From contig NW_026924640.1 of the NCBI RefSeq assembly GCF_032062105.1, positions 62,001 through 126,000 of the forward strand: DNA of 64,000 nucleotides, in the 5' to 3' direction. The position numbers were made by a program, and so were the translations under genes. The stretch is from Saccostrea cucullata. Its lineage: Eukaryota. Positions 1 to 19,209 of the stretch are shown piece by piece; position 1 is the stretch's first letter; the number at the start of each line of letters is the position of its first letter. Under the pieces are notes generated by a model, which was given only the letters and a program-made list of their open reading frames with translations, was not told the DNA's origin and did no database searches.

Positions 1-2089
1 CGCATGTAATTAAACAAATGATTTTTCACTATTGTTGTACTAGTTTCTACCAGGTATTAATGTACATAATACTTATCCCAATATTTTTTCTGGACGGTCA
101 TGAATTCTTTCTAGTGACAGATAGTAAATTGCGTCATTTTACAATGGTCGAAGTTACCAACCAACGCCGTATTCATGATGTAGGGATAACTTGGGTCGAT
201 TTCTGTTCAGCTGATTTGCAATTTGATTTGTAAAACCAAATACTATAAATTAAAAGGGTATAAATTTCATTTTCAAAATAATACAATGTATTTGATAAAT
301 GTCACGCCAGGGATATCCATTGATTGTCTTTCCAGACAAGATTTTTCTGAGTTGATAGTTCGCCGTAGTGGTAAAAAATATACTCGTCTGTAATTTTTAG
401 GGTGATAAAGCCTTTTCTTTGATGTAATTTTCCAGTAACGATCTTAATAACGCTCATGGAATTAAAATTATTTTGGACACAATAGTGTAATGGCCTGGGG
501 TAGAATTTAATAAATTAGTTTATTTTTTTATGATTTAATTGTGTCAACATTTATTGGGAAAATTATCTGGGTTGATTTTATTATGCATTAATGACACTAA
601 TACATTTCAGTCCTTTGATTATTTACTCAACGTGATATTGTCTATTTTTAGCACATTTGACATACTTGTTGTTTGGATTTATACAGGAAATGCTATATTT
701 TATGAATTCATGTGCATACCTTCAGAATCTTTGCATGTTACTGTATTTTACTTGATTATTTATGAGTCAAATAAGCGCTTGACATAGCCATAATTGCACA
801 CGATTATTGGAGTCATGGAAGTTGTTTACATCCCGCCGACATCTTATTTGTATTAGCCAGAGTTTCGTATTTCAGCAAGATGTATTTTGTTATGCAATTC
901 GATGTTATAATTGCTTGTGAATATCCACAAAATTAATGTTTGAATATGTTTTACTAAGATTTATCAAGGGATTTTATGTTAAACGTGATTTTATGGTAGT
1001 TACACATTTTTACTATGACCAAGCTATTTGAATATCGTCTGCTATACGATTGCAGTTTTCTGTCATGAAATGCGCGTTTAATTCACATGAATTGTTTACT
1101 TACAGTAGATGAAAACATCTTTTGTAGTCCATATTTATTGTTTATTTTGTCTTTTCACATTTTAATTCCGTTTTATAGTTATTATCCTCATTGTACGGCA
1201 GCCTTGTTTGACACTGTTTGACAGATCTCTGTTTGTACGGCGCCGTACAGCGCTGCGATTGGTTGAGTGACACCGTACAGCTTTTTCACTGGTCAATTTG
1301 TATCACATGACTATTTCCGAAGGTTATAAATATAAGTGCCTCGCCAGTCTCTGGCAGATAAGTTGCACAAGCAACATCGCAGGATTGTAGCCTAAACCTA
1401 GGTGAGACAACTGTAAATTATCTCCCAACACACTGGACACCTGATGTTATATTTTTAGAGCTTTTTCATGCCAAATCAACTTTATTATCATTTTTTTATC
1501 CCTGAAAATACGGTTGACACTGTGGGACAAAATGAATATTAATTATCTATATGTTTCCAATATAGATGTTTGTTTACCTATTGTTATTTCCTGTTGAATG
1601 ATCAATTAATAAACCAATTATTAAACTGATACCAAGCCTTGTCCTTATTGAGAAATATGAAGCAAGAAATAAGGAGTGACCTTGAGAAGTATTGTGTGTA
1701 ATTATTTTGTATAGCCCCCATTCCAGGATGGCCATCCGTGGGGAGCTTACAATATATTAAAAATACGTTTTCTTTCTGCATAATATAAATGTACATACAC
1801 AATTATACGCCATAAACAAAATATATTAAGGTATTTATGAAAGGTCGAAATTAACCAGGTGGTCGAAATTACACCACCCTACCCTATACTTTCATGTTAA
1901 TTGGTTGTATCTGGTATTTCCTTGGGTGAAGAATTTCAATGTTACCCTCAACTGCAGGCGATGTTTTTTAATTATTATTTATCAGGCATTTATCACAAAA
2001 AGGCGGAGTGGAGATTATTGAACCTCCAATTAAATTACAGGTTTTGACTTGTTCCCTTCTCTCTCCCCTCCACAGGAAGAAATCAGACC

Positions 2090-2810
2090 TTTCAGTCAAA
2101 ACTGAATGACATATTTCAGCAACATTTCAGTGACACTTCAGTCACTGAATGGCACACACTTTTCAGTGACCTTTCAGACAACATTCAGTGACATTTCAGT
2201 TAGCATTTCAGTCAACATTCAGTTACCTTTACGTCGTCATTCAGTGACCCTTCAGCCAATATTCAGTGACCTTTCAGCCAACATTCAGTGACCCTTCAGC
2301 CAACTTTCAGTGACCTTTCAGCCAACTTTCAGTGACCCTTCAGCCAACTTTCAGTGACCTTTCAGCCAACTTTCAGTGACCTTTCAGCCAACTTTCAGTG
2401 ACCTTTCAGCCAACTTTCAGTGACCTTTCAGCCAACTTTCAGTGACCTTTCAGCCAACATTCAGTGACCTTTCAGCCAACATTCAGTGGCCTTTCCGCCA
2501 ACTTTCAGTGACCTTTCAGCCAACTTTCAGTGACCTTTCCGCCAACTTTCAGTGACCTTTCCACCAACTTTCAGTGACCTTTCAGCCAACTTTCAGTGAC
2601 CTTTCAGCCAACATTTAGTGACCTTTCAGTCTTGTTTTAGTAACCTTGCAGTCAAAATTCAGTGACCTTTTCAGCCAATGTTCAATAACCTTTCAGCTAC
2701 ATTTTGTCATTTTTCAATCCACATTAAGTGACATTTCAGTTCAACATTCAGCAAATTTTCAAAATTTTAGTTTCCTTTCTGGTCAAGTTTCCGTGACCCT
2801 TCAGTCATCA
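2090..2810 (+). repeat. Left subterminal tandem array, 22-bp unit TTTCAGTGACCTTTCAGCCAAC
   Basis: Visible tandem repeats made of two 11-mers, each containing TTCAG; most homogeneous at about 2240-2630. Confidence 0.95.
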
Positions 2811-3120
2811 AAAAAAATTCAAATATGGCTTGATACTTTTAGTCAATATATAATGTAGGTTAACTTGGTTTCAACTAAAATTAGACAAATCGCTTTACTC
2901 TTTATGCATATTTCAGGAACATTGCTGTCAATATTCCTTTTCCTTAATATTGTGATTGTCTACCAACACAATTAATTTCTATGTCATGACCTGTCTACAA
3001 GAGTGTTCATAGTCTTTGTTAAATAATATTTGTTAAATAATATTTTCTCGAGGTCAAGATTTACTTTTTGCTTAGAAACAAACTTCATGCTGTGTTTCTA
3101 TTTTTGAATGCTTTTTAATA

Positions 3121-3309
3121 CAGTGGAGCCTCAGTTATCCGGACGCTTTGATTCCTGAGTAATTTGTCCAGATATGTGAAGCATCTGGATGAACTGACTA
3201 ACCAGTTAAACTTGACAAAATAATGTTTTAAAAATTCTGTTCAAATGAAAAATCATTTGGAAACTGAAGCATTCCGATTTCTGGCGTCTGGATATCTGAA
3301 GGCACACTG
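3121..3309. mobile_element. Tc1/mariner(pogo)-type MITE nested in the CACTA element
   Basis: TA|CAGTGGAGCCTCAGTTATCCGGACG ... CGTCTGGATATCTGAAGGCACACTG|TA: imperfect TIRs with TA flanks. Confidence 0.65.
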
Positions 3310-4139
3310 TATAAAGCATATATAGCTCATAAAAAGTAATTTAAATAAGCATGTACATCTATCACAGCTTTTTTTATAATTCCGCTGAAGAAATGAAAGA
3401 AGGAAAACCTTTACACATTTACAACATTTTATTTCATTGAACCACCTGGTATATGTTTACTTAATATCATTGAAATATCAAACTATAAAATTACACATTA
3501 ACACAGCAAATATGTTGCATTCTACATAATGAAAAATACTAGTATTAGTCCATGATGATTCTGATTTACATTTTCTTCATTTTTTCTTTCGTTAATATGA
3601 CAAGGTCCCAAGACCATAAACTGATAACAGACTTATGTCAAAATTTAAAACTAGTACATGTATAACTTTTGAAAATAATTTGATAATATAAGGAAACAAA
3701 ATTTAAATCATAAATTTGATTTTTACTGTTATAAATAATTGCAAAATTTTAAGCTAATATGTCAACCAAACTCAAAATATGAAATATCAAAATTAGAAGT
3801 CTATTCTAAGTTTATGGTCTTAGGGTCAGTGCTGATATGCCTAAATCAAAATAGGAAATCTAATACAGATTAAGTCTGATATAAAACATAAATAATCTAC
3901 AACATGATTTAAAAAAAAAACAAGTACAAAAAACAGTGAATGTGGATAATTTGTCAAAAAGAATATTTTTAATAATAAAAAAAAGAGCTCTACACAAAAC
4001 AATTTAATATATAAATAACTAAAAAAGCACTACAAGGTAAATTTCAATTAATTTCAACAAGAATAACTTAGAACATGTATGATCAGTGAAAAAAAATCAA
4101 CTTAAAAATGATACAAAACTGAAATAGTTTTACAATAAG

Positions 4140-4862
4140 GTAGAATATCAAGCAAATTTGATTCTACTCCAACAGAACTGGCTTACATGTAATCTAAAAA
4201 AACCATCACTATCATGATAAAAATTTGGAGTAGCTCTACGACACGGTAGAACATCAAGCGAACTTGATTCTACTCCAACACAACTGGCTTACATGTAGTC
4301 TAAAAAATTTTTAAACTATCACTATCATGATAAAAATTTGGAGTAGCTCTACGACACGGTAGAACATCAAGCGAACTTGATTCTACTCCAACACAACTGG
4401 CTTACATGTAATCTAAAAAAAAAACTATCACTATCATGATAAAAATTTGGAGTAGCTCTACGACACGGTAGAACATCAAGCGAACTTGATTCTACTCCAA
4501 CAGAACTGGCTTACATGTAATCTAAAAAAAAAACTATCACTATCATGATAAAAATTTGGAGTAGCTCTACGACATGGTAGAACATCAAGCGAACTTGATT
4601 CTACTCCAACAGAACTGGCTCACATGTAATCTAAAAAAAATAACTAACACTATCATGATAAAAATTTGGAGTAGCTCTACGACACGGTAGAACATCAAGC
4701 GAACTTGATTCTACTCCAACAGAACTGGCTCACATGTAATCTAAAAAAAATAACTAACACTATCATGATAAAAATTTGGAGTAGCTCTACGACACGGTAG
4801 AACATCAAGCGAACTTGATTCTACTCCAACAGAACTGGCTCACATGTAATCTAAAAAAAAAA
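4140..4862. repeat. About 110-bp minisatellite, about 6.6 copies, downstream of the transposase stop
   Basis: Units start at 4140, 4246, 4359, 4468, 4577, 4687 and 4797; each has the internal hairpin GTAGAACATCAAG-CGAA-CTTGATTCTAC. Confidence 0.95.
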
Positions 4863-4955
4863 CAATGTGACAAAATATCAGCTAAACTTGGTTCTCCTCC
4901 CAATACTTTGTACCAAAACAATGCCATTTGTACCTGCACGATTTTATTGATACCA

Positions 4956-7900
4956 CTAATGATCTATGTCACTAAGGACTCTCCTAGGAATAGGGCATAT
5001 ACACATAAGATCCTTTCCCACACCAGTAAGTCCCTTCGAGAATCTACTATGAATCTTCTGAATGGGAAGAAAACAGTTATCGACTACGGATTCAAATTTG
5101 TTGCTGTGCCACATTTGAAGTGCATTTCCGTACTTGTATCTTTCTGAATATTCTTTGTACCATGAAACTTTTGCAAAAATATTTGTAATATGTTTTCCAT
5201 CAATCAAAGCTGTGTGAGAGAAATAAAAATCTACCCTACATGGACGTAGTTCTAGGGGAGAGCACTCAAAGTTGTTTTGTTCCGTTGTCCAATTAACTAA
5301 AACATCTGATGACCTTAATTTTCTGTTAATTTGTTTTGATCCAAAATTTTCACCTAATATTGTAATAAATCCATACTTCTTAATAATTTCACCCATATTA
5401 TCAATACTGAGAGACACAGAAGGAAACATTTTCCTGTATGAAGACATGAGATACACAATGTCTTCTTTGTCAAGTGCAGACAGTTTGTAAACCTTAGGTA
5501 ATGAAATAAAAGACATCAAGTCTTCATCAAAAAGGAAGTCAGCCCCAATTTCAGATGTTTTTAGAAACCTTACGATATCTGTTATCTTTAACTTTTCCCA
5601 CAAAGATTTACTGAAATTGAAGAATACTTCAGAAAAGTCAACCTCGGTAGTTGACAGCACGACATCTTTAAAGTTATCACAGAATTTTGAAGTCATGATT
5701 TTTCTCATGAATTGAATTTCTACTGCCTTATTGTTTGTATGAAAGTGTCCAAAAGCCCCATTATATCTCTCAAAAGAAAAACACCAGAAAACGTGCATGG
5801 GACCAAAATCAAACAAGCAATCTTTTAAATGATTATGTAGATGCATGTTACAAGTGACTTCTTTTAATGGGTAAATCTTTTCAAAAGTTTTGCAAAAGTC
5901 AAGTAACAATAGATCAGCTTTCTGAATATCAGTGAGAGTTAGAAATGGTTTGCATAGAAAACGACAACCTAATACAAATTTTTCCCAACATTTGTAATCT
6001 TTCTCTGGTAGTATTCCACACAAAGCATAGAGTGAAAATGTGGTTGTCCAGTTTTTCCATTCAGCTGCAGAAAATACACCATAATTTCCAGAAATATGTG
6101 TGGGAATTCTTCCTATGTCAGTTAAGGAATTTAGAGATTCTAGTCTTTCTTCTATAGTTTCCAAGTTTGACGGGGACAATTTGCCACTTTCAACCCAAAG
6201 TTTGAACATTTTTTTTGCCGTTCCAAGAAAGAGGTTGTGCATTGGGTCAATAACACAAAATTGTATTGCATCAAAATATTCCAACTCTATTAACACACTA
6301 TAAAAAGTCCCATATTCCCTAGAAAGTTTATCCGCCTGTGTCTTACTTGTTGCATTCTTAACCCTTCTGGCATGTAAATTATGAGTATATTTTGTTCTGG
6401 GTTTCCAATTCTGCCTGTCAAAACCTGAATAGTCTCTTTTTTCCCCAAAGTCACCAGGAAAAACTTTTAAACATTTATGGCAACCCAAACGAGCAGCGTG
6501 CGATTTAAATCCACAACACTTGCGAGCAGCTGGTATATCACAAGACACACAGAGCAGGGCTGCTCGAAAAACAGATGAAGAATTAAACAAACTTGTGTCT
6601 AACCTGACTCCTTTCCAAAGTGTTTGTAATTCATTAACAATTGGATCTAAAAAACTATTGATACTATGTGGCTCTTTTTTGAAAGCAGGTATTAATCCAG
6701 CAATTATTACATTTTCAGACTTAAATCTAATGCTTCTGGGTAAATTTAACATAACAAAATAAATAACTCCTACTGAATAATCATTCCTGTGTTTAAAGGG
6801 CTGAAACCAGTCTATATTCATCATTAATGCAACACTGTTTTTGTTAGAGAGAAAGGGCTCCCCATTGAAGGACAAAAAATTTTTCCATACTCGTCCATCA
6901 TATACATCTCTTAAAATTGTTAAATCCGAACCCCAGTCTTGCCAGTGTTGCCAAAATTGCCCAATTTCTTTCCTTTTCAAAATAGTTTCAATACCATTAA
7001 TTACACTGTTCAAACAGTAAACTTTCAATGGATAAAATTTTCGGATGTTACCCTTGCAAATAATCTGTTTAACTAAGGGAGAATTACATTTTACATATCT
7101 CCCTCTAACTTTTATTTCAGCAGAGCAGTTTTTTCCGTATCTTAATCCATCTTTCTCATATACACAGTCCAAAAAATCGTATAAACAAAAACATGAGGGA
7201 CACACAACAAATCGCTGAAATTCATCTCTATCTAGCTTCAATATTTTTCTGGCTAAATACAAACTTGGAGGAAATCCAATACAAAATTCTGTTAGCACTT
7301 GATTATTTATGTCTGCACCAAGCACTTGAAAAATTCTGAACAAAAATCGTAAAAGATACTCAACACCATTATCACTGATGTGGTGTATAACCTGAATGTA
7401 CAGAATAGCATACAGTACACAGAAAAGCAAACTGTTGACTTTCTTCATGGGGGATGGATGGACCTCAATTCCGAGTTCATTGTCCAAAAGGTTGGCTGGT
7501 ATGTCCCAGTGCTCTGGTTCATCCTCATTTTCTTCTTCACTATCCTCCATGTCTGACTGAAATTTTATGTACAATATTTTTAGACACAATTTTAAATAAA
7601 CCAGCAAACAGAGACCAGTCCAAAAACTATGGAACAGTCTGAAATGGCACTTTAGGCCAAATAAAAGTGAAAATGCATCACTGGAGTATATGATTTTCCA
7701 TTGGGAAATGAAAAGGATATATCTTATGAAATGAAATTGTAAACAATTAAATGAAAAATGCTCACTAGTAATACCCACCAGATGACTGAATATACTTGAA
7801 CATGTGTTGAATGTGCATGAATTTACTCAAGTTCAGTTACAGACAGTCATATAATTTAACTTTTATAAAATAACTGATTCTGATTGGATAAAAAATTCTT

Positions 7901-10900
7901 TTGATAACTGCATCAATTTAATGCATGGAATCTTGAGTTAGCTTGCACTAGGCAGTCGGAACTACTATGGCTGTTTTTACATGTACATGTATATTACACG
8001 ATTCCAGTTTTCTGTTTCAAGGAATAGATACTTCTACTTTAGGCCAAAATAAAATATACTCTTGTATCCTGTCCCCTGCCCAAAAAAATTAGGGTTGGTA
8101 GGTAGGGAAAAAATTTTATTTTGAGAAAAAATTTTATTTTCAAAATTTAATGAATGCAGAACATATAGCATGTAATAACTGTAATAACAAGAAAATGATA
8201 TGTTAACAGTTTCAAAGCAAGTTTGTTAATCAAGATTTATAAAGTAAAGGTAACCTGTACACTTGTGATGTATTAATTCTGTAAATATCATTGGTCAACT
8301 TCAGTATTTTAGAAAAATAGTTATCCAAAAAATGAAAATGTAATAAAAACTTTTAGGGTCGGAGGGTAAAATGTAGGGTAGGTCGGGTGACAGGAAACAG
8401 GAGTATTTTTTATTTTGGCCTTAATAGATATTTTCCAGAACTTTGAAACTCGTTCATTATGTTCTGGATATATTTACTACTTTCGTTTGTTTCTTTTTAA
8501 ATGATCCCCATTTGCTAAAGAAATCAAATTGTCTACATGACAACAATACAGTTATGGGATGGGAAAGAAGAAAAAAATCAGCATAGTTTTGTTAAATGTT
8601 TGACTTTGAGATTACTGGTATAAACAATTGAACTCTGAAGACATTATTTATGCTACAAAATCTGGGAAATGACTTGCAAGATAATCTCTTAATCCTTCAG
8701 ATTTTTCAGCATTGATGGATTGTGATACATATTTATATGTTTGATTTGAAATTCAGAGGAAAAAATATGCAAATGAACATGATGAAATCCTATGCACATT
8801 GACAATATTTTCCGTTGATTTTTATCTTTGATATATCGATCAAGCGAAAAAATATTACCCGGTACCTTAATTCATTTCTTTAATGAATTAGCAGGAAGTT
8901 GTATCATATTCAATAAAAACTAGAACTGTCCAATAGGGACAAATACCCTCTGTTGGGTTTTTCAGAGAAGGTGTCAAATCACAAATACTAAATGGATCTA
9001 GAGGTGTTCACAATTTTTTTTTACAAACATTTGCAATGAAATATAATTGCTTATTATGTATCTTAATGAATGAAACAAAGATGCAACCAAATGAAACATT
9101 AATAATAGTAATACATTGTAATTCCACTGCAACATTTTTTTTTATTTCTGTATTAAAAATTTTTTATTGCAATTATGTGTCATGACACTCTGCAAACTGA
9201 TTGTTGAAAAAATATCATATTATACCAGTGATTGGGATAAGCTAGGGAGTAAATGTGAATGACGCACCCCAAGTTAGTGTCAATGTGACATTTCAAAATT
9301 CAATGCGCCAAACAGACTTTTTCATGGGACATTTCCTAGTTACAAATTTGCAATTGATTACTTGCTGTTTGAATTTCAGTTGATTTACTTAATTGAAATT
9401 GTCAAATTATTGAATGATGACATTAAAAGATACAAAATTAGTATATTTGTATTCACAAGTGTCAGAAAATAAATAAACACTGCAATTTAATTTCAATTCT
9501 TTATTTTTTGTGTCTGATGTTTGACATCTTTAAAATGATTTAAAGCTTGGTTTAGATCTATACTGCTTCCTTCAAATTTATGTTAAATTTTCGTTTTGGT
9601 TTTTCCTCCGAGACTACATCATCAGTCTTACCGTCAGATTTATCTCGATTCGTTCTGTCAGCATGTTATACTTATTCCGAGTCATTTTGTAGCGATTTAC
9701 TTAAATTTGTTTGTTAGGATTGTGAGAATTAACAAAAGTCTGTCCTTTATCGGTACGAGGTATTTTCTTATGCAGCATGCTGCACTCCTGACACCAGTTT
9801 ATTTCGTGCCCGTTAGGAAATCAGAAAACATGTAACTGTTTGATTAGATACTGGAGAAACTAAAGTCATACAAACTCTTTAACTGAACGATGTAAAACAC
9901 TGTTTTTATTTCAAGCATAAGTTGTCAGCGATTGTTATGGGAAAGACTAGGAGCGCTTGGGGGAAAGCTCAAAGTTTAAAAGTATGCAGTGCATTACATG
10001 CGCCATGATGGCGCAGTGTTTTTAATTTTAATGTGACATTTTAAAATGTAATGCGACTATGGTGCAGGGTGCGTGCTTATCCCAATCACTGTTATACAAA
10101 ATCAACATTTTTGGAATGTTTTTTTATCAATACTTATTAACAAATTACACTAAAGATGTCTCACCTGATCACTTTCTTCTGAAACTTCTGCTGCCATTGA
10201 TGACGTAGGTGGCATGTCATCCAAGCAATCATCTGCATCTAAGGAAGATTGAATATAGAATTATTACACAATGCACTCCACTGTTGAATAAAAGGGTTAC
10301 TTTATCATGTTTATTAAACATCTAAAGTATTTGTAATTTAATCAATTACTTTTCATATCTACCCAATCACTGCCATCTAACATAAACAAAAATGTGTGTT
10401 TGGAACAAATTTGTAACAAATTGTTAATTTTTGCAAATTTTTTCCTTTAATTTTTTTAAATCATCAAATAATTAACATACTATCATGACTATACATTACA
10501 TCAAGTTAACATCATGTACTAGTAGTTTGAAAAGTGCTGTTTCTATATAATTTAAGTACCCCAATTGTAACTTTGGATAAATCACAATCCATGATTTGTT
10601 TTATAAATAAAATGAACTGTTTTTTTTAGGATTGTCCCAATGACTCTGGGAAAGGGGATTTCCCTCACCTATAATGACTTAACGAGACCGGGTCTACTTA
10701 AATTTACTCTAGGGTTTTTGGTAATTTTTTGTGAAATAGTTTTTACTTTTATGTTCATTGTTTTGAGAATATAACTCAAATGTTTTCCATCCGAATTCTT
10801 TAAGGGCCCACCTAATGCAGTTTAATTTGGTATTACACACAACCCCTTTTAGGATAGGAAAAACCAGACCCCATTATATGCTAGAAGGCTTGAAATTATA

Positions 10901-11610
10901 ATTAATAAAGTGCCGCGTCACAGCATGATATGCCCTTCAAAAAATTACAATTTTCTTGAATAGTTTAGGTGCAAGGAAATCATGTCAACTTTGATTCTAA
11001 GATTTTGATGATTTTTCCATTCCTTAAGATATTTATCCATCCCCTGTGATGTAGGCAGTAATTATAATAAATATTACATCACTGATAGATTTCTATGCTG
11101 GCTGTGTTAGACCTTGTCAAATGCCCATCATATTAAACAATACTTGATAAGTTTGATAATCCTAGGTCTAATAGTATTAAAGTTATGAGCCGGAAACAAA
11201 AGCGCTAACAGACAGACGGACGGAAACGAAGCCTTTAACATAACATGTCCCGTTTTAAGATGGGCATATAATAAAGTAAAAGTAATGAACAAAATAATGG
11301 GGAAATAACCCAAAATAATGACATTTTTAAAAATTTTAAAACAAATTTTGAAAAATAACTTGTTTTGGTTATTCACATACACTATATAATATATCAGTGA
11401 CATTTATATATACATACCGGGATGGTCTGAAGCTCTCCCAAAGTCTTCAATCAAGTCTTTAAACCTCTTGTCGGACATCTCTCGAACTGCAGCCTCCCCA
11501 TGGTCGAGCCAGGAGTTTGTGCTTGGATCAAAGAAACTTGCATAGTGTCGATAGTAGCTACTTCGGGGAAAATCCTCATGGCATATTGGACATCTCTTCC
11601 TTTTTGGCAT
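4956..11610 (-). CDS. CACTA/EnSpm-type (Tnp2/Transposase_21-like) DDE transposase, 3 exons, about 955 aa
   Basis: Exons 11610-11418 (MPKRKRCPICH...RH, C2H-type finger), 10238-10165 and 7556-4956, with GT-AG introns in compatible phases (1, 0). Motifs: NIDWFQPF, LNLPRSIRF, SCDIPAARKCCGF..H...GCHKC, DPMHNLFLG, NMHLHNHL, FGP..FWCFSFERYNG. No internal stops. Confidence 0.9.
8042..8420. mobile_element. Kolobok-like MITE in transposase intron 2
   Basis: GGCCAAAATAAAATATACTC ... GAGTATTTTTTATTTTGGCC, flanked by TTTA / TTAA. Confidence 0.65.
9226..10091. mobile_element. Non-autonomous TIR element (hAT-like ends, 6-bp TSD) in transposase intron 2
   Basis: Perfect 17-bp TIR CAGTGATTGGGATAAGC; TTATAC on both sides. 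Confidence 0.75.
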
Positions 11611-13822
11611 GACCTAGTGATTAAATAAAGTGCTGATATAAAACTGCAAAATGGTCAAACAATTACTTTCAAGGCTTTTTGTTATTATATTTGTCAGTGA
11701 AATTTGACACATACCAGTAAAATATTCACTTTCCATTGAATAGATTTTACTAGCCAAAAAAACTACATTTTCTTCATTTTTAATCTTAAACCACCACTTT
11801 TAGGCATCATGACATCAATCAAGTGTTTGAACTTATTACCATGGTACTCTCTTTTGTTTTTAGTGAATAAAAAAGCCCATGGTACATAATATGAGTAGTC
11901 AAATAGACAAATAACAGTCAGGACAGGGGTGTGACTTAAATCCATTACTTTTTAGAATAATGATGAAAAACAGTCATATCTATTTTGAAATTTATTTCCG
12001 AAATTAATTATGACTGTATTTCATCCTTCCTTTTTTAAATCAAATTCTTAAGTCTGGGTGCTCTTAATTATCTGATAAGTTTTAAGGGAAGCACTAACTA
12101 ATAATCTGGTTTTAATTACTTGTCAAGATATTTCTCTACACAAAGGTCTATGGCAGAATAGTGTACCATATCAAATTACTGTAAATAGGTTGGAAAAATT
12201 GAATTGACTTGGGAATGAAAATAATTTTAATAATTCACATTTTAAATATACCATGTGTACTTAGAAAAGATAATTATCAATAATTTTTTATAAAAAAAAT
12301 GGATTTCAATCAAATCCCTGACTGAATAATTTTATAAAATTTGCAACTTGATGTGTCAATACATAATATCACAAGTACCTTGCAGTTATTTAACTTATTA
12401 CTGCTCTTTTGTGGGTGAATCATGAAAGCTCTAAATCTTGCGATTACTGGGGATCATGGCATATTGTTTACAGTAGTGACAATCAAATGATTGAAATAAT
12501 TTTATGCAAAAAGTAGAAAGTATTGAACTCCAAATAATAGATTTTCAAATAAGGAAAGTTTAGAATATTTTATCTGCTTTAATGTGTGACAATTTTCAAT
12601 AAAAATTTAATCAGAAGAGCCTGCTTACTTAAAAATATTGTTAAAAATTGTATTATTTTTGGATAAGCTCCTCTCAAAAACTAATAAGGCTGTTTCAGCA
12701 ATTGTATAGCAAGACATTCAACCAGGATTTTATACTTATCCGTTGCTAATGATCTACAATGATCTTCAAGTCTACAATGATGGATCTTACATTGTATTCA
12801 AGAACTCATTTGCCCCAATCCAATAGTCCTTTCCTACCTATACAGTTATTATGTAATTGCGATATGAAGTTTTAAAACACTTAATGTAAGTTTAGATTAC
12901 GGTAATACTCAATCTTATTTTTAACCCAAGGGCATATAACTGTTCCTGCATATCAGAATATTCAGTGAGGCCTGAATTAAAAAAAAATTAACAACTTCTA
13001 AATGTCTACAACCTTGTATCAAGGCAATTCATGATGCTGACTTGTGATGTATAGTCCAATCCACAATTTGCAAAAGTTAGTGAGGTCAACCAATAGGTCA
13101 AAAGGTAAAGAAAAATCATTTCTCCTCCTTATCAATTATGCTATACACCAAATATACCAGAGTTATTTCTCATTGGCTGCCATATTCAGTCAGGGATGTG
13201 ACTGAAATCCATCATTTTTAAAATGAAAATAATTGTCATTTCTTGTAAGTATATAATGTACACTTTATCTTATTTTTGTAAATATGACCTCTTTCAATCA
13301 TATTTCCATTCCCAAGTCAATTTTCCCAACCCATCTACTACAGTAATAAGATATAGTACACTATCCTGTCATAGGCCCTTGTGTAGAGAAACATCTTGAC
13401 AAGTAATTGAAACCAAAATAATTTAGTGCGCCCCATAAAACCAACGAGATAACGAGTGCGTCCAGACCTAACAATTTGATAAACAAGAGATGTTTGTAAA
13501 ACACATATACCCCACTCCCCCCAAATTTGAATTTTAATTACTAAGTCCAAAAGGGCATAACTCTGTCTAAAATGGTGCGATCCTACCCAAAACATTTCCT
13601 GACCAAGATATTCAGCTGAAAAATCTGTATACTAAATTTCATTTCAACATGTTCAATATGTGCAACCTCTGAGAAAAAAATGAACAGAAACTGCAAATAA
13701 ATGGAATTTTTTTAAGTGGGGGGTATTGTTTTTTTTTTAAATAAATTGTTAAAACTTCTTCTATTTCATAATTTTTATTCCATAAATATTTCCCCACAAA
13801 TATTTCTGCTACACTCTTTTAC

Positions 13823-13994
13823 CAGGTTGGGACCACTCGCCCAAATGGGATATAATAGGCCGTTTGGGATAGAATATCCCAAATGGGCTATAAATTTACA
13901 GTGCAAAAAATAAAAAAAAATTTATTTTGGATAATATATCATATATATAATATATAGCCTATTATATCCCGTTTGGACGAGTGGTCCCAACCTG
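13823..13994. mobile_element. Short MITE (hAT-like ends, 5-bp TSD)
   Basis: About 38-bp TIR CAGGTTGGGACCACTCGCCCAAATGGGATATAATAGGC; TTTAC on both sides. Confidence 0.8.
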
Positions 13995-14514
13995 TTTACA
14001 GCTGTCTTATAGGCCTATTTGGTAGGACAAAGAGCGAAAATTACCCGGTGCCAGACAACTCACCGAAAGACAGGTCACCGACAAAAGTGAAATTCGCGGA
14101 ATAGACAATTCACCGACAATAGTGTCGGTGAGTAGAAATTCACGGACAATGTTTTATAATAATTGTTAGATGAATAGATGTCGTGTTAAGTATTCAGATA
14201 TAATAAACATAATCAAAGATGCATTAAAAAACATGTATTTCTTTGTCCATCTACTTCAAATCTTTGTTCAGTGGAGCTTAAAAGTAGAGTTGAGCTTTTT
14301 TGATCATCCATTATCTGCAGTCTGTCTGTCTGTGTGTCCTTATTTAAACTTTTTTTTTACATTCTTGCTCCTTCCGTTCCATTTTTTAAAAAAAAGTTGG
14401 CACAAAGCTTTCCTTGGTGAAGCTTTTCTTACTATACTCCCTACTTGAAAAAGTGGGCAGTTATATGATGATTAGGATGTGATCCATTTATCTATCTGCT
14501 CAGCTGTTCCTCTA

Positions 14515-15080
14515 TTTGTTGTCCCCCGCTTGAAAAGTGGGGGATATTAATTTGGGTCTGTCGGTCCATCTGTCCGTCCGTCTTTCTGTCTGTCTGTAAC
14601 GCTTCCGTTTCCACAAGATATCTCAAGAACCCTTTGAGCATTTGCAATGAAATTTAGCATAGCAACTCCCTGTGGCCTAAGGAAGACCCCTATTGATTTT
14701 GAGGTCAAAAGGTCAAAGATCAAGGTCATTAATAAGCAAATTCTGTCTGTTATAACACTTTCGTTTCCACACGATATCTCTCGAACCATTTGAGCTATTG
14801 CAATGAAATTTAATATAACAACTACCTGTGGCCTAAGGAAGACCCCTTTTGATTTTGAGGTCAAAAGGTCAAAGTTCAAGATCGTAAATCTATACATTCT
14901 GTCTGTGTGTAATACTATCATTTCCGGGCGATATTTCAAGAAGATTTTGAGCTTATGTAATGTAATTTTATACCAAAACTCCCTAGGACCTCTCTCAACC
15001 CTCTCAAAGTGCCCCACTCCGTTTGTTTTACTAGTATTTATCGTATTGCCTGTCGCTATTTTTAGCACAGGGGCATGCGG
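14515..15080 (+). mobile_element. Non-autonomous Helentron/HINE-like element
   Basis: Starts with T-run plus CCCCCGCTTGAAAAGTGGGGG hairpin, then a (GTCC/GTCT)n microsatellite and internal repeats with GAGGTCAAAAGGTCAA. Similar remnants at about 10900-11280, 13480-13720, 14270-14460 and 28300-28590. Confidence 0.6.
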
Positions 15081-15436
15081 AGAGTTATTGCGTATAAAAC
15101 ATGTTCTTGGAGGGCTTAATGTTCTTATTTCAGCAAAACTCGTTTAATACGAACACAGATATTGCTAATGTACGACTATAACGAAGTCATCTTGAATCCT
15201 CAGCTGTATAAATTTAATGACTTTTCTATACGGTTATAACAAATAACGGTTATAGCGAAGTAATTTCATAGGTCCCTGTGACTTCGTTATAACAGAGTTT
15301 TATTGTACATCTATTAGAACTGTTAAAAGCTAAATAAATCAAACACCGTGAATTGTGTAAAATTTTGATAATACCAAACATGAATATATACATGTATGTT
15401 ACTTCACTTCTGCATATACTTCATTTCATTAAAAGC

Positions 15437-15508
15437 GGTTCCGTGGTCTAGTGGTATGTTTCCCGCTTCACATGTGAGAGGTCCCGGGATCGAATCTCGG
15501 ACAGATCC
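15437..15508 (+). pseudogene. Degenerate tRNA-Val(CAC)-like sequence or tRNA-derived repeat
   Basis: GGTTCCGTGGTCTAGTGGT...CTTCACAT...GGTCCCGGGATCGAATCTCGG; A and B boxes recognisable, but the TTC is changed to ATC and the stems are imperfect. Confidence 0.5.
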
Positions 15509-16072
15509 TTTTATTTTTTTTTTACTTTTCTTTTTTTTTAATGATAGTATTCAACATGTGAAAAGAATAATTTATGAGGTTATAAAATCATCATTACAGT
15601 GTGATAAATATTGATTATAAAAAGAATCTTCTATGTATACACATAATAAAGAATAAGCAATCAAATCTTTATACGCATATTGACATACATGTATTTTATT
15701 TGCTTCAGTATACATGCAAACATTTAATAATTCTACAAATTCAGTCAGGGGATCCGACTTTTTCCCTAAGCGGGGGACACAAATTCTCTGAATTATCTTG
15801 TTTTACATTATTTTTATCAGCAACTTCCCATACACCACTTAATGAAATTTGATGAGATTTTCTGGAATCTTTTTTAAAATTGTGAACATTCTATTTCACA
15901 TTTTGATTGGACACATATTTTTTGGGTTTCCCATAGCAAAACATGGTTACTGCCATTATATTCATATTGGAGATGGGGTATCATTTAGTGTTCTCATTGA
16001 TCATAAAACCTTCTTTTTTTTTATTTTATTGAGCATCAACTGTTACCTTTAATTTTTCATTCCTTTTTGTAG

Positions 16073-17185
16073 GTGCCTGCAAGACATACTTCATATCACT
16101 ACGGGATTCCGAAAGAAGAAAACAGAACGGGCGAGACAAAGACCATGCCACAAGAAGCAGACGTCAAAGCAGAAGGCGAGAAGTATGTATATAAACTTCC
16201 TTCAAATTTGTCATTATTAAGTCATGAAAAAAGTTTAATGGCAGGTGTACAGGTACAAAATAAAAAATCTCTGTAACAGCATTAATGTTTATAGTTTGAT
16301 TTTACAATGAAAATCTTTATAATTTTTTTTCCTTATTTATGAAAGGGAAGTTCATCAGTTTATAGAAGAATACTGTAAATAACATATTTTTGTTGGATTA
16401 AATTTCTGAGGGTTTAGAAAAAAAATTATTGGACCTGGTATGTGGGGACATGATTTTGTGTTTGGAAAATGTTTTGAAATACAGATAAAATTATATATTT
16501 CTTGGTGTCTTGTAAATTCATGGTGTCTCCCCATAACTGGTAAACAGCAAGAATTAAACCCCCACAAAAATAAGTGACATCACAGTAACCATTAACAAGG
16601 CTGGGGGGTGGCAGCTATTTTAAGACCATTTCTATCTCCTTTAAAAGAAGAGCTCCATATAAAAATATACAAAAATGATCAAATTTTAAAACTAAAATGT
16701 ATGATTTTTTTTCTTTGCCAAATGATAGTTGACAGCTTAAGATACCGTATCAAAAAAATAAGTTAAATCTGGTGGTTAATTTGTGGTTAATTTGTTGACC
16801 CCGATCCTCCTTAAAGAAGATAAATTTATCACAGATTTTCTTTACTGTTTTACAGAGAGCAAGAAAACTAAAGAGGACTCTGACTAACATCAGCAGAGAC
16901 AAACTTGGGGACTTTGACAGGTCAAAGCTGATGGAGGTGATGACCCCAGAGTACCTGTCCTCTGAAGAGTCCGAAGAAGATGAAGGAGGGAATTTTCTAC
17001 ACTTTAAAGTCCGCCGGCTGCCATGGCAGAGGGAAACCTTCCAGAGGCTAAAAGACAAACTGGAAGAGGCCCACAAAGAGAGCCTGACCCCCCAGCACAA
17101 GAGACAGCTGAAGAAGAGGGTGATTGATGAGGACTTCTCTTCAAGAACAGCCCCAGATGACTGCCCTAAGTTTGTGAAGGACTGA
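16073..17185 (+). CDS. Transposon second gene, C14orf93-like protein (3' exons only)
   Basis: Exons 16073-16182 and 16856-17185 (AG/GT, in frame) give ACKTYFISLR...RRQSRRRERARKLKR...YLSSEES...VRRLPWQ...LKDKLE...KRV....SSRTAP. The motif order resembles the C14orf93 C-terminus as recalled (GAC..YF, MSDEED, SDRLP). Upstream exons not found. Confidence 0.65.
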
Positions 17186-18199
17186 AGAGATGAAGTGAAC
17201 TCAAGGACAGCCCGAGGAGACAATCATGCACAAATAAAAGATTGACTATTGTATATTATGTAGTCTGTAGGAATTAATTTATTTCATATTTATTGTTATC
17301 ATTTTTGTTAATTTATTTTTTAGAAAAGATGCAATCTTACAATAGTAGCTGCCTGTGCAATTTTAATAGTAGCTCATCGTATTTATTAATATATATGTTT
17401 AAGAATTATAAACTGGTAATGAATACTTTTTTTCACAATATTTTTTAACTGTGATAATTATTTTCTGACACAAATCAGACAAATACATATTATTTAAAGC
17501 AATATGAGCTGCAACTTTAAAATTTACCATTGGTAAATTATCATCAACTATTTCAAGGATAAAGAGAAAGAGCATTTTATGAACTTCTGTCATTCATATT
17601 TGTAGAAGAAAACTATTTACAAGCTCGTAATAATGCAAATTGACATTATTGTCATTCTGTAATCTATAGTTTTCTTAAATAATACTACATATTTGTTTGC
17701 TACAGAGGTCTCTTTTGGAACAGATTCATACTTTATTGTAGACTTATTGATCTGAAAGATTAAATTACTTAAAAATTATCATGACACATTTCAATCATAG
17801 TAAAATATATTTTTTTTTAAAATGCAGCCCATATTGCTCTAATGTGAAATCTATAAATATTTGTTTTTGCCAATGTATTTAAAGAAACATGTTTATGATT
17901 CCTTTTCTCATCAATTTTCATTTTTGAATTAATCCATTGAAGAGAAGTTTGTATTGCTTGAGTTCAAAAAAAAAAAGCATTATATTTTGTGTCAAGAGCA
18001 ATCAATGTTTTCATATGATTGTACCATTTTGTTATTTATTTTCAAAATGCTTTCACATTAAAAAAAAAAATTATTACTTTATTAAGTTGTTTTATTTTTT
18101 ATGGAAATTCTCTTGATGATGACAAGGATATTGTTTTAGGTCATTGAAATATGTCTGAAAAATAAAAGAAGTGTGACTAATTAATAAAAAAAAAATTAG

Positions 18200-19080
18200 A
18201 CTGAATAGTAATTGAAATATGGCTGAAGGGTAACTTAAATGTGGCTAAAAGGTCAGAGATATATAGCTGAATGGTAACTGAAATATGGTTGAATGGTCAC
18301 TGAAAGGTCCCTAAAATATGGCTGAAAGGTCACTGAAATAAAGCTGAATGGTAACTGAAAAATGGCTGAAAGGTCACAGAAACAAAGCTGAATGGTAACT
18401 GAAAAATGGCTGAAGGGTCACTGAAATATAGCTGAAAGGTCACTGAAACATGGCTGAAAGGTCACTGAAATATGGCTGAATAGTCACTGAAACATGGCTG
18501 AAAGGTCACAGAAACAAAGCTGAATGGTAACTGAAAAATGGCTGAAAGGTCACTGAAATATTGCTGAAATGTCACTGAAACATGGCTGAAAGGTCACTGA
18601 AATATGTCTGAAAGGTCACTGAAACATGGCTGAAAGGTCACTGAAATATGGCTGAATGGTCACTGAAACATGGCTGAAAGGTCACTGATATATAGCTGAA
18701 AGGTCACTGAAATATGGCTGAAAGGTCACTGAAACATGGCTGAAAGGTCACTGAAACATGGCTGAAAGGTCACTGAAATATGGCTGAATAGTCACTGAAA
18801 CATGGCTGAAAGGTCACTGAAATATTGCTGAAATGTCACTGAAACATGGCTGAAAGGTCACTGAAATATGGCTGAAAGGTCACTGAAACATGGCTGAAAG
18901 GTCACTGAAGTATGGCTGAAGGGTCACTGAAAGATGGCTGAAAGGTCACTGAAATGTATGTGCCATTCAGTTGAATGAATGGTCACTGAATTGTAACGGA
19001 ATTGTAATGGAAAAGATCTTTATCAGTGATCATTCCTCCACCATTCCGCTTCCATTCAGTCACCTTTAAGTCGACTGAAT
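18200..19080 (-). repeat. Right subterminal tandem array, 22-bp unit GGCTGAAAGGTCACTGAAACAT (inverted relative to left array)
   Basis: Its reverse complement ATGTTTCAGTGACCTTTCAGCC shares 19 of 22 nt with the left unit. Confidence 0.95.
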
Positions 19081-19209
19081 GGTTAGATTTCATCCTGTGC
19101 TCGAACTTTGAGAAAACGATTGTATAAGCGTTTAGTTGTTGACATTTTACTTTTGAATTTCCTCAAAACAGCGAACGTTATCTCCATTTCTAAACTGTCA
19201 TTTTTTAAG

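Follow-up and report, generated by a model that had tools for sequence, protein, structure and literature searches.

The window analysed here is a stretch of 64,000 nucleotides from the oyster Saccostrea cucullata (NCBI RefSeq assembly GCF_032062105.1, contig NW_026924640.1, positions 62,001 to 126,000 of the forward strand), and coordinates given without a contig or locus handle are positions within it. It holds a complete DNA transposon of the Tnp2/CMC (CACTA-like) superfamily which encodes, besides its transposase, a second protein gene on the opposite strand. The two exons of that second gene at 16073-17185 are our subject; related genes were found beside Tnp2 transposases in other copies of the element, in divergent subfamilies and in other animal phyla. 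The features of the element and its two genes are as follows.

2071-19099, no strand: whole Tnp2/CMC (CACTA-like) DNA transposon of 17 kb, with CACAG...CTGTG ends and a 3-bp target-site duplication, CTC
2206-2670, plus strand: left subterminal array, in which the 22-bp unit TTTCAGTGACCTTTCAGCCAAC is repeated about 23 times
4956-7778, minus strand: main exon of the transposase, an open reading frame (ORF) of 940 amino acids (Pfam Transposase_21/Tnp2, E = 5.7e-17)
11404-11610, minus strand: first coding exon of the transposase, encoding a Cys/His-rich N-terminus (60% identical in the C5039/C11624 subfamily)
11809-11881, plus strand: first coding exon of the NCBI model of the second gene (protein P0001), 24 codons and one base, donor GT at 11882
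14521-15800, no strand: 1.28-kb insertion in the long intron, private to the window copy (the closest copy, C12024, is contiguous here)
16073-16182, plus strand: penultimate exon of the second gene, frame 16075, acceptor AG at 16071-16072, donor GTATGT at 16183
16856-17185, plus strand: last exon of the second gene, acceptor AG at 16854-16855 after a pyrimidine tract, TGA stop at 17183-17185
18200-18954, minus strand: right subterminal array, in which the 22-bp unit, inverted, is repeated about 30 times, 1 kb downstream of the stop of the second gene

The element is bounded by imperfect 27-bp terminal inverted repeats (TIRs) at 2071-2097 and 19073-19099 (23 of 27 positions identical); its left terminus, at 2071, reads CACAGGAAGAAATC, and an imperfect inverted copy of this finishes at 19099. 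With the second gene on the plus strand and the transposase on the minus strand, the two are head-to-head genes, and only 198 bp separate the transposase ATG from the ATG of the P0001 first exon (11809). The 3' end of the second gene faces one of the two subterminal repeat arrays.

An earlier reading of the letters alone (the initial annotation) had proposed two in-frame spliced exons inside the element, oriented away from the transposase, and the coordinates and opposite strands agree with it. The penultimate exon starts with a split Gly codon, after which 16075-16182 makes up 108 nt, or 36 whole codons, so both exons are in frame; the splice sites are canonical, and the 16182/16856 junction is also the one used by the NCBI model, P0001 ("uncharacterized protein LOC134266916 [Saccostrea cucullata]", 170 amino acids, 100% identical). 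The exons were searched singly, and the joined product is represented by this database protein. The penultimate exon codes for the GACKTYFISLRD motif and an Arg-rich helix, and its identity to the counterparts in seven other oyster copies is 57-92%; the last exon encodes the remainder of that basic helix, an acidic SSEES strand, a VRRLPW hairpin, a further helix and an S.R..P...CP tail. Their joint translation thus runs from GACKTYFISLRD through a long Arg-rich stretch to LSSEESEED, VRRLPW and SSRTAP, the succession of motifs that had been described. Splicing of such genes is also apparent from a related oyster, in which a transcript-like contig of 922 nt (L057) encodes protein P0005 in one unbroken ORF, and the alignment of this contig to the genome breaks at exon boundaries, as that of a spliced RNA would.

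The window copy does not hold the whole gene. Three related proteins encoded on transcript-like oyster contigs, P0005 (240 amino acids), P0006 (224) and P0007 (211), have an extra conserved N-terminal region of about 65-90 amino acids, which the elements on contigs C5039 and C16921 encode in two exons upstream of the GACKTY exon. Neither of these two coding exons was found in the window by tblastn with a word size of 2 or by hidden Markov model (HMM) search with filters off, and none was found within 9-13 kb upstream in the copies on C12024 (91% DNA identity) and C241 (81%). Having lost two exons that its sister subfamilies retain, the window copy is N-terminally truncated, as the initial annotation had suspected on failing to find 5' exons; the part that is absent amounts to about 65 conserved residues, namely helices 1-2 and part of helix 3 of the model described below. 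With its two exons the window covers the 3' two-thirds of the second gene of the transposon. P0001 begins instead with an unrelated exon of 24 residues, making its 170-residue product a truncated form; these 24 residues (11809-11881) show no conservation in other copies, and the exon is probably a makeshift start of the truncated gene, judging from such comparisons. In the 33-kb elements of C5039 and C11624 we also observed an extra, inverted and partial second upstream exon (L033:6654-6767, plus strand; L044:3812-3922, minus strand) near a high-copy repeat, which suggests an internal inverted duplication.

Despite this loss the second gene is under purifying selection between copies: comparisons of the last exon in six pairs of copies, over 95-114 codons, gave values of dN/dS (the ratio of nonsynonymous to synonymous substitution rates) of 0.12-0.28, and for the window copy against C241 the value was 0.16 at a dS of 0.39. 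As the last exon is constrained within the window's own subfamily, the short form is perhaps useful, or the loss of the upstream exons recent.

A profile search found at least 138 exons related to the C-terminal half of the protein in the oyster genome. On 12 contigs (C6777, C5039, C16921, C6646, C1791, C4837, C10803, C18878, C11245, C12397, C4842 and C10739) such an exon occurs together with a Tnp2 transposase, itself 34-100% identical to that of the window, at a spacing of 5.6-26 kb, or 0.3 kb in the internally deleted copy on C10739. Scored from coordinates, the second gene and the transposase are divergent in 12 of the 12, that is, in one fixed arrangement out of four, which is not what chance would give; moreover, with about 140 module loci and about 100 transposase loci in 1.17 Gb, we estimate that only about 0.7 pairs within 30 kb would be expected by chance. 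The element on C5039, 33 kb long and with a transposase 75% identical to that of the window, has arrays of the same 22-bp unit at its two ends, beyond the two genes. Two oyster subfamilies that are 78% identical in the basic exon and 55% in the last exon share this unit exactly, and in the sister copy C9991 the same CACAGGATGAAATC terminus adjoins the second gene.

The family extends far beyond oysters. A profile search of 1.84 billion representative proteins gave 605 relatives at E ≤ 1e-3, with named members in amphioxus, starfish, sea cucumber, acorn worms, brachiopod, ribbon worm, sea anemones and bivalves; the shared region of about 200 positions, hereafter the module, ends about 20 residues or less from the C-terminus in most of the full-length matches, regardless of the length of the protein. 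In eight of 11 non-oyster loci (Actinostola, Actinia, Lineus, Lingula, Apostichopus, Acanthaster, Ptychodera and Branchiostoma, representing Cnidaria, Nemertea, Brachiopoda, Echinodermata, Hemichordata and Cephalochordata) a Tnp2 transposase lies no more than 10 kb upstream of the module gene, recognized either by its Transposase_21 annotation or through a tblastn match of 39-48% identity spanning 700-890 residues, and seven of these eight pairs are divergent. The gene models are about 0.5-0.8 kb apart in compact elements, and in Actinostola and Lineus a tandem array follows the module gene as it does in the oyster, with units of 43 and 45 bp, respectively, compared with 22 bp. The Actinostola model (P0043) illustrates the difficulty of annotating such loci, gene prediction having fused the module gene to neighbouring exons. 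That the oyster exons belong to a second gene of animal Tnp2/CMC transposons, present in at least seven animal phyla, oyster included, is therefore strongly supported. The initial annotation had called them the element's second component and anticipated that homologues would co-occur with Tnp2-type transposases; both statements now rest on the position of the exons between TIRs together with a Tnp2 gene, and on a linkage that holds across copies, subfamilies and phyla (12 of 12 oyster contigs divergent, transposase nearby in eight of 11 other loci).

Beside the module gene and the Tnp2 transposase, a gene with a Pkinase domain was observed in a sea anemone, a ribbon worm and an amphioxus (L050:8085-9108, minus strand; L049:7684-8004, minus strand; L054:993-2425, plus strand), with 31-32% identity between phyla. 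Some elements may carry this protein-kinase gene as a third cargo; no such gene was found in the oyster loci.

Not every homologue keeps such company. No transposase was found within 10 kb at the other three of the 11 non-oyster loci (Patiria, Potamilus and amphioxus P0038), whose proteins are longer, and about 100 oyster module-like exons have no listed transposase on their own contig. The amphioxus case is the most informative: P0038 of Branchiostoma lanceolatum (L055:10001-15460) is a protein of 532 amino acids with the module at residues 320-513, it has orthologues of 71-77% identity in two other Branchiostoma species (three Branchiostoma species in all), and its neighbours within 10 kb are zinc-finger and esterase genes, with no transposase. 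Conserved orthologues and ordinary neighbours make it a candidate host gene, or domesticated copy. As a separate observation, about 50 open frames of about 112 amino acids in the oyster genome have a match limited to the second half of the model, at positions 32-107 in the C-terminal profile (examples are C6646:4767-4991, C11324:16817-17041 and C4415:922-1146, on contigs without a listed transposase); these may represent a short single-exon paralogue or part of another carrier element.

Homologues without a transposase within 10 kb, the truncation of the window copy and the unrelated first exon that the NCBI model needed might all be taken to mean that the gene is a passenger, a fragment of a host gene captured by one transposon lineage and without a role in its life cycle. 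A passenger would hardly keep its head-to-head position with oyster transposases that are only 34-48% identical to each other, and in seven phyla, nor would repeated capture be expected to give the divergent arrangement in 12 of 12 contigs; purifying selection between copies likewise speaks against it. The linkage data largely refute this explanation, and we consider it very improbable indeed.

For a view of the whole module we turned to P0005, which retains the N-terminal part. An AlphaFold2 model (m5e90c185e56f), based on an alignment of 150 homologues, had a mean pLDDT of 93.7 and a pTM of 0.79. In it helices at 25-41, 58-74 and 85-108 are followed by a second long basic helix (111-137), an acidic serine strand (162-167) that pairs with a strand (173-179) preceding an invariant Trp, and a helix (186-202) before a short tail. 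The predicted layout of the module thus starts with an N-terminal part of three helices, followed by two long helices rich in Arg and Lys, a YMSSEES strand paired with V-R-x-L-x-W, a helix and an S.R..P...P tail. Invariant or nearly invariant positions among the 150 members are two serines, the Trp and a Leu. Given the confidence of the model, the basic helix appears to be part of a folded domain and not a loose tail, and the fold, as modelled, is possibly an undescribed one.

The initial annotation had further suggested a similarity to the C-terminal domain of vertebrate C14orf93, a single-copy host gene product of about 540 amino acids. We made this comparison through the Pfam model DUF4616 (PF15394, 524 positions, cut-off 27 bits). 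A Pfam check of the spliced window peptide itself came out negative, since P0001 matched no Pfam family at E ≤ 1, nor did P0005, P0006 or P0007. Among the 150 members, however, DUF4616 was the most recurrent of 24,736 Pfam families, matching six of them, while the next families matched three. Three of the six were located by halving the set: P0110, the best member (residues 17-94, HMM positions 402-471, 20.7 bits, E = 2.5e-4), P0082 (HMM 402-460, 14.3 bits, E = 0.022) and P0114 (HMM 401-459, 12.9 bits, E = 0.058). The located matches are colinear, span 58-70 positions within HMM 401-471 of 524 and continue past the acidic patch; P0110 is in turn related to the window's last exon (32% identity over 101 amino acids, E = 3e-13). 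In a search by embedding in the ESM Atlas, the nearest named clusters to an amphioxus member and to an oyster member included one that bears DUF4616, and clusters of fungal DUF8263 (PF26792) were closer still (score 0.94, 190 of 256 features shared). The neighbours were Basidiomycota DUF8263 proteins and Mucoromycota DUF4616 proteins of about 140 amino acids, which hints, as a lead, that the module occurs in fungi as well; CMC-type transposons are abundant in fungi.

This resemblance might be spurious, reflecting a common acidic Ser/Asp/Glu patch next to a basic stretch instead of descent. All six matches score below the 27-bit cut-off, so membership in the family is not established, and an acidic serine patch could inflate such scores; weak matches were also seen to other acidic/basic families (SPT16, SSRP1_C). 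DUF4616 was matched by neither the window exons, nor six oyster proteins, ten long members or 34 full-module members, nor the long proteins of amphioxus, echinoderms and hemichordates, and a six-frame scan of the oyster genome gave a single noise match elsewhere (E = 2.1). A word-index search started from an alignment of the family reached amphioxus proteins only. On the other hand, DUF4616 was matched twice as often as any other family and with the best E-value among the recurrent ones, the located matches share a stretch (HMM 401-471) that reaches well past the acidic patch, and the independent embedding search retrieved a DUF4616-bearing cluster too. We judge a spurious resemblance to be improbable, and conclude that the module, in its C-terminal half, is probably related by remote homology to the C-terminal region of C14orf93/RTFC, judging by this sequence evidence. 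What had been suggested in the initial annotation thus survives in part: recurrent, colinear sub-threshold matches from relatives favour it, and the oyster proteins themselves contribute none.

Taking these lines together, the best explanation in our view, to which we give a probability of roughly 70%, is that the head-to-head second gene encodes a non-catalytic cofactor or regulator of transposition with a TnpA-like role and with kinship to C14orf93. We envisage that both genes would be co-expressed from a shared bidirectional promoter in the short intergenic region, and that the module protein would be nuclear and non-catalytic, serving as a cofactor or regulator that acts with the transposase on the repeat-rich ends. 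Its basic helices would contact nucleic acid, and its acidic strand, with serines of casein-kinase-2 type, would be a regulated protein contact; the protein would in this way fill the role of maize En/Spm TnpA without being kin to it. Binding of the 22-bp repeats in the manner of TnpA is proposed by analogy of role. The conserved Arg-rich helices and the identity of the 22-bp unit in two subfamilies are compatible with DNA binding, although as weak points.

Several results weigh against the cofactor reading, beginning with those already given, namely the module genes and exons that have no transposase nearby and the sub-threshold DUF4616 scores. Because the window copy is truncated, it may not make a functional protein. 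No recognisable DNA-binding domain emerged from fold and sequence searches with the module: Foldseek gave no convincing match for the P0005 model (E ≥ 0.56), structural alignment with VIA gave Z ≤ 6.7 and covered the N-terminal helices only, which is in the noise range for helical domains, and profile searches of PDB sequences were empty. Finally, the transposase's own Cys/His-rich N-terminal exon could bind the repeats instead.

Some of these results would suit a different protein, a host-directed regulator that works through protein contacts made by its phospho-acidic strand and by the basic helices (in nuclear import, chromatin or histone handling, anti-silencing, or the dosage of transposase) and does not bind the DNA ends. 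A DNA-binding fold was not recognised, and the invariant residues are the acidic serines, the Trp and the Leu, not basic ones; phyla share the module but differ in the units of the downstream arrays (22, 43 and 45 bp), and a kinase gene adjoins the module gene in some elements. Against such a regulator stands the conservation of the long Arg-rich helices, and the identical 22-bp unit in two oyster subfamilies with 78%-identical basic exons is compatible with DNA binding. We regard the host-directed alternative as unlikely, and prefer a cofactor or regulator that acts at the element's ends.

Other features of the element are recorded here for completeness. A tandem array of units of about 110 bp lies at 4151-4846, between the left subterminal array and the 3' end of the transposase, and copy C12024 has a single unit related to these (L038:7581-7722). 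At 14040-14247, within the long intron, a block of about 100-200 bp with a short internal palindrome is shared by three transposon subfamilies. Its portion at 14040-14150, with a donor-like GGTGAGT on both strands, was considered as a shared promoter or first exon and rejected, for it proved to be an interspersed repeat of high copy number (103 candidates, of which 40 were scored, at 91-100% identity) that varies in place and orientation among copies of the element.

The second gene of these animal transposons is previously undescribed; to our knowledge, animal members of the superfamily have been treated as transposase-only. A conserved second gene would alter their annotation, where gene predictors now give an "uncharacterized protein" or fusions, and would likewise alter what mobilisation assays must supply, and redirect the search for domesticated descendants. 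More broadly, and tentatively, since we hold it to be somewhat less probable than its opposite, a module of about 200 amino acids with a fold of unsolved type might be the universal second gene of metazoan (perhaps also fungal) Tnp2/CMC transposons, a cofactor as old as the superfamily in animals, with C14orf93/RTFC, and possibly the 532-residue amphioxus gene, as domesticated descendants.

Among known systems, C14orf93 (RTFC, mouse 4931414P19Rik) resembles the module through the colinear sub-threshold match of relatives, over only about 70 residues, and differs in being a host gene, whereas the module gene is transposon-borne and multi-copy; C14orf93 may have been domesticated from the transposon gene. 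C14orf93 has no identified structural domain, was found to be mainly nuclear in a localisation survey, and is of elusive function (PMC5322522), though it has been linked to familial thyroid carcinoma and to cortical development (PMC5322522, PMC10163356). The literature that we searched held no link of C14orf93 or DUF4616 to transposons, and kinship with the module would be the first testable idea on the origin and biochemical nature of C14orf93/RTFC. The likeness to fungal DUF8263 is one of feature proximity in the ESM Atlas only, and serves as a lead.

CACTA elements with two components are classical objects of plant genetics, and maize TnpA is an alternative splice product of a single transcription unit. 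With En/Spm TnpA, and with the ORF2 of plant CACTA elements, the oyster gene has in common a non-catalytic second protein in an element with a Tnp2-type transposase, CACxx ends, a 3-bp target-site duplication and subterminal arrays. It differs in that the protein comes from a separate, opposite-strand gene with its own exons and is not a splice form. No similarity to plant TnpA was found: besides the lack of any Pfam match for the four oyster proteins, no plant TnpA family was among the top 25 recurrent Pfam families of the 150 members. With no sequence similarity and a different gene layout, "TnpA-like" denotes an analogy of role only, TnpA being a protein that binds subterminal repeats and is required for transposition (PMC1636069). 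The nearest animal precedent for such a role is SmTRC1, a CACTA element of Schistosoma mansoni and, like the oyster element, an animal Tnp2 element, whose shorter, transposase-free products PrA and PrB were proposed as TnpA analogues (PMC1636069). PrA and PrB arise from the transposase unit by alternative splicing, and the authors reported no similarity to any other element of animals or fungi (PMC1636069); the module of the oyster element, by contrast, is divergently encoded and conserved across phyla.

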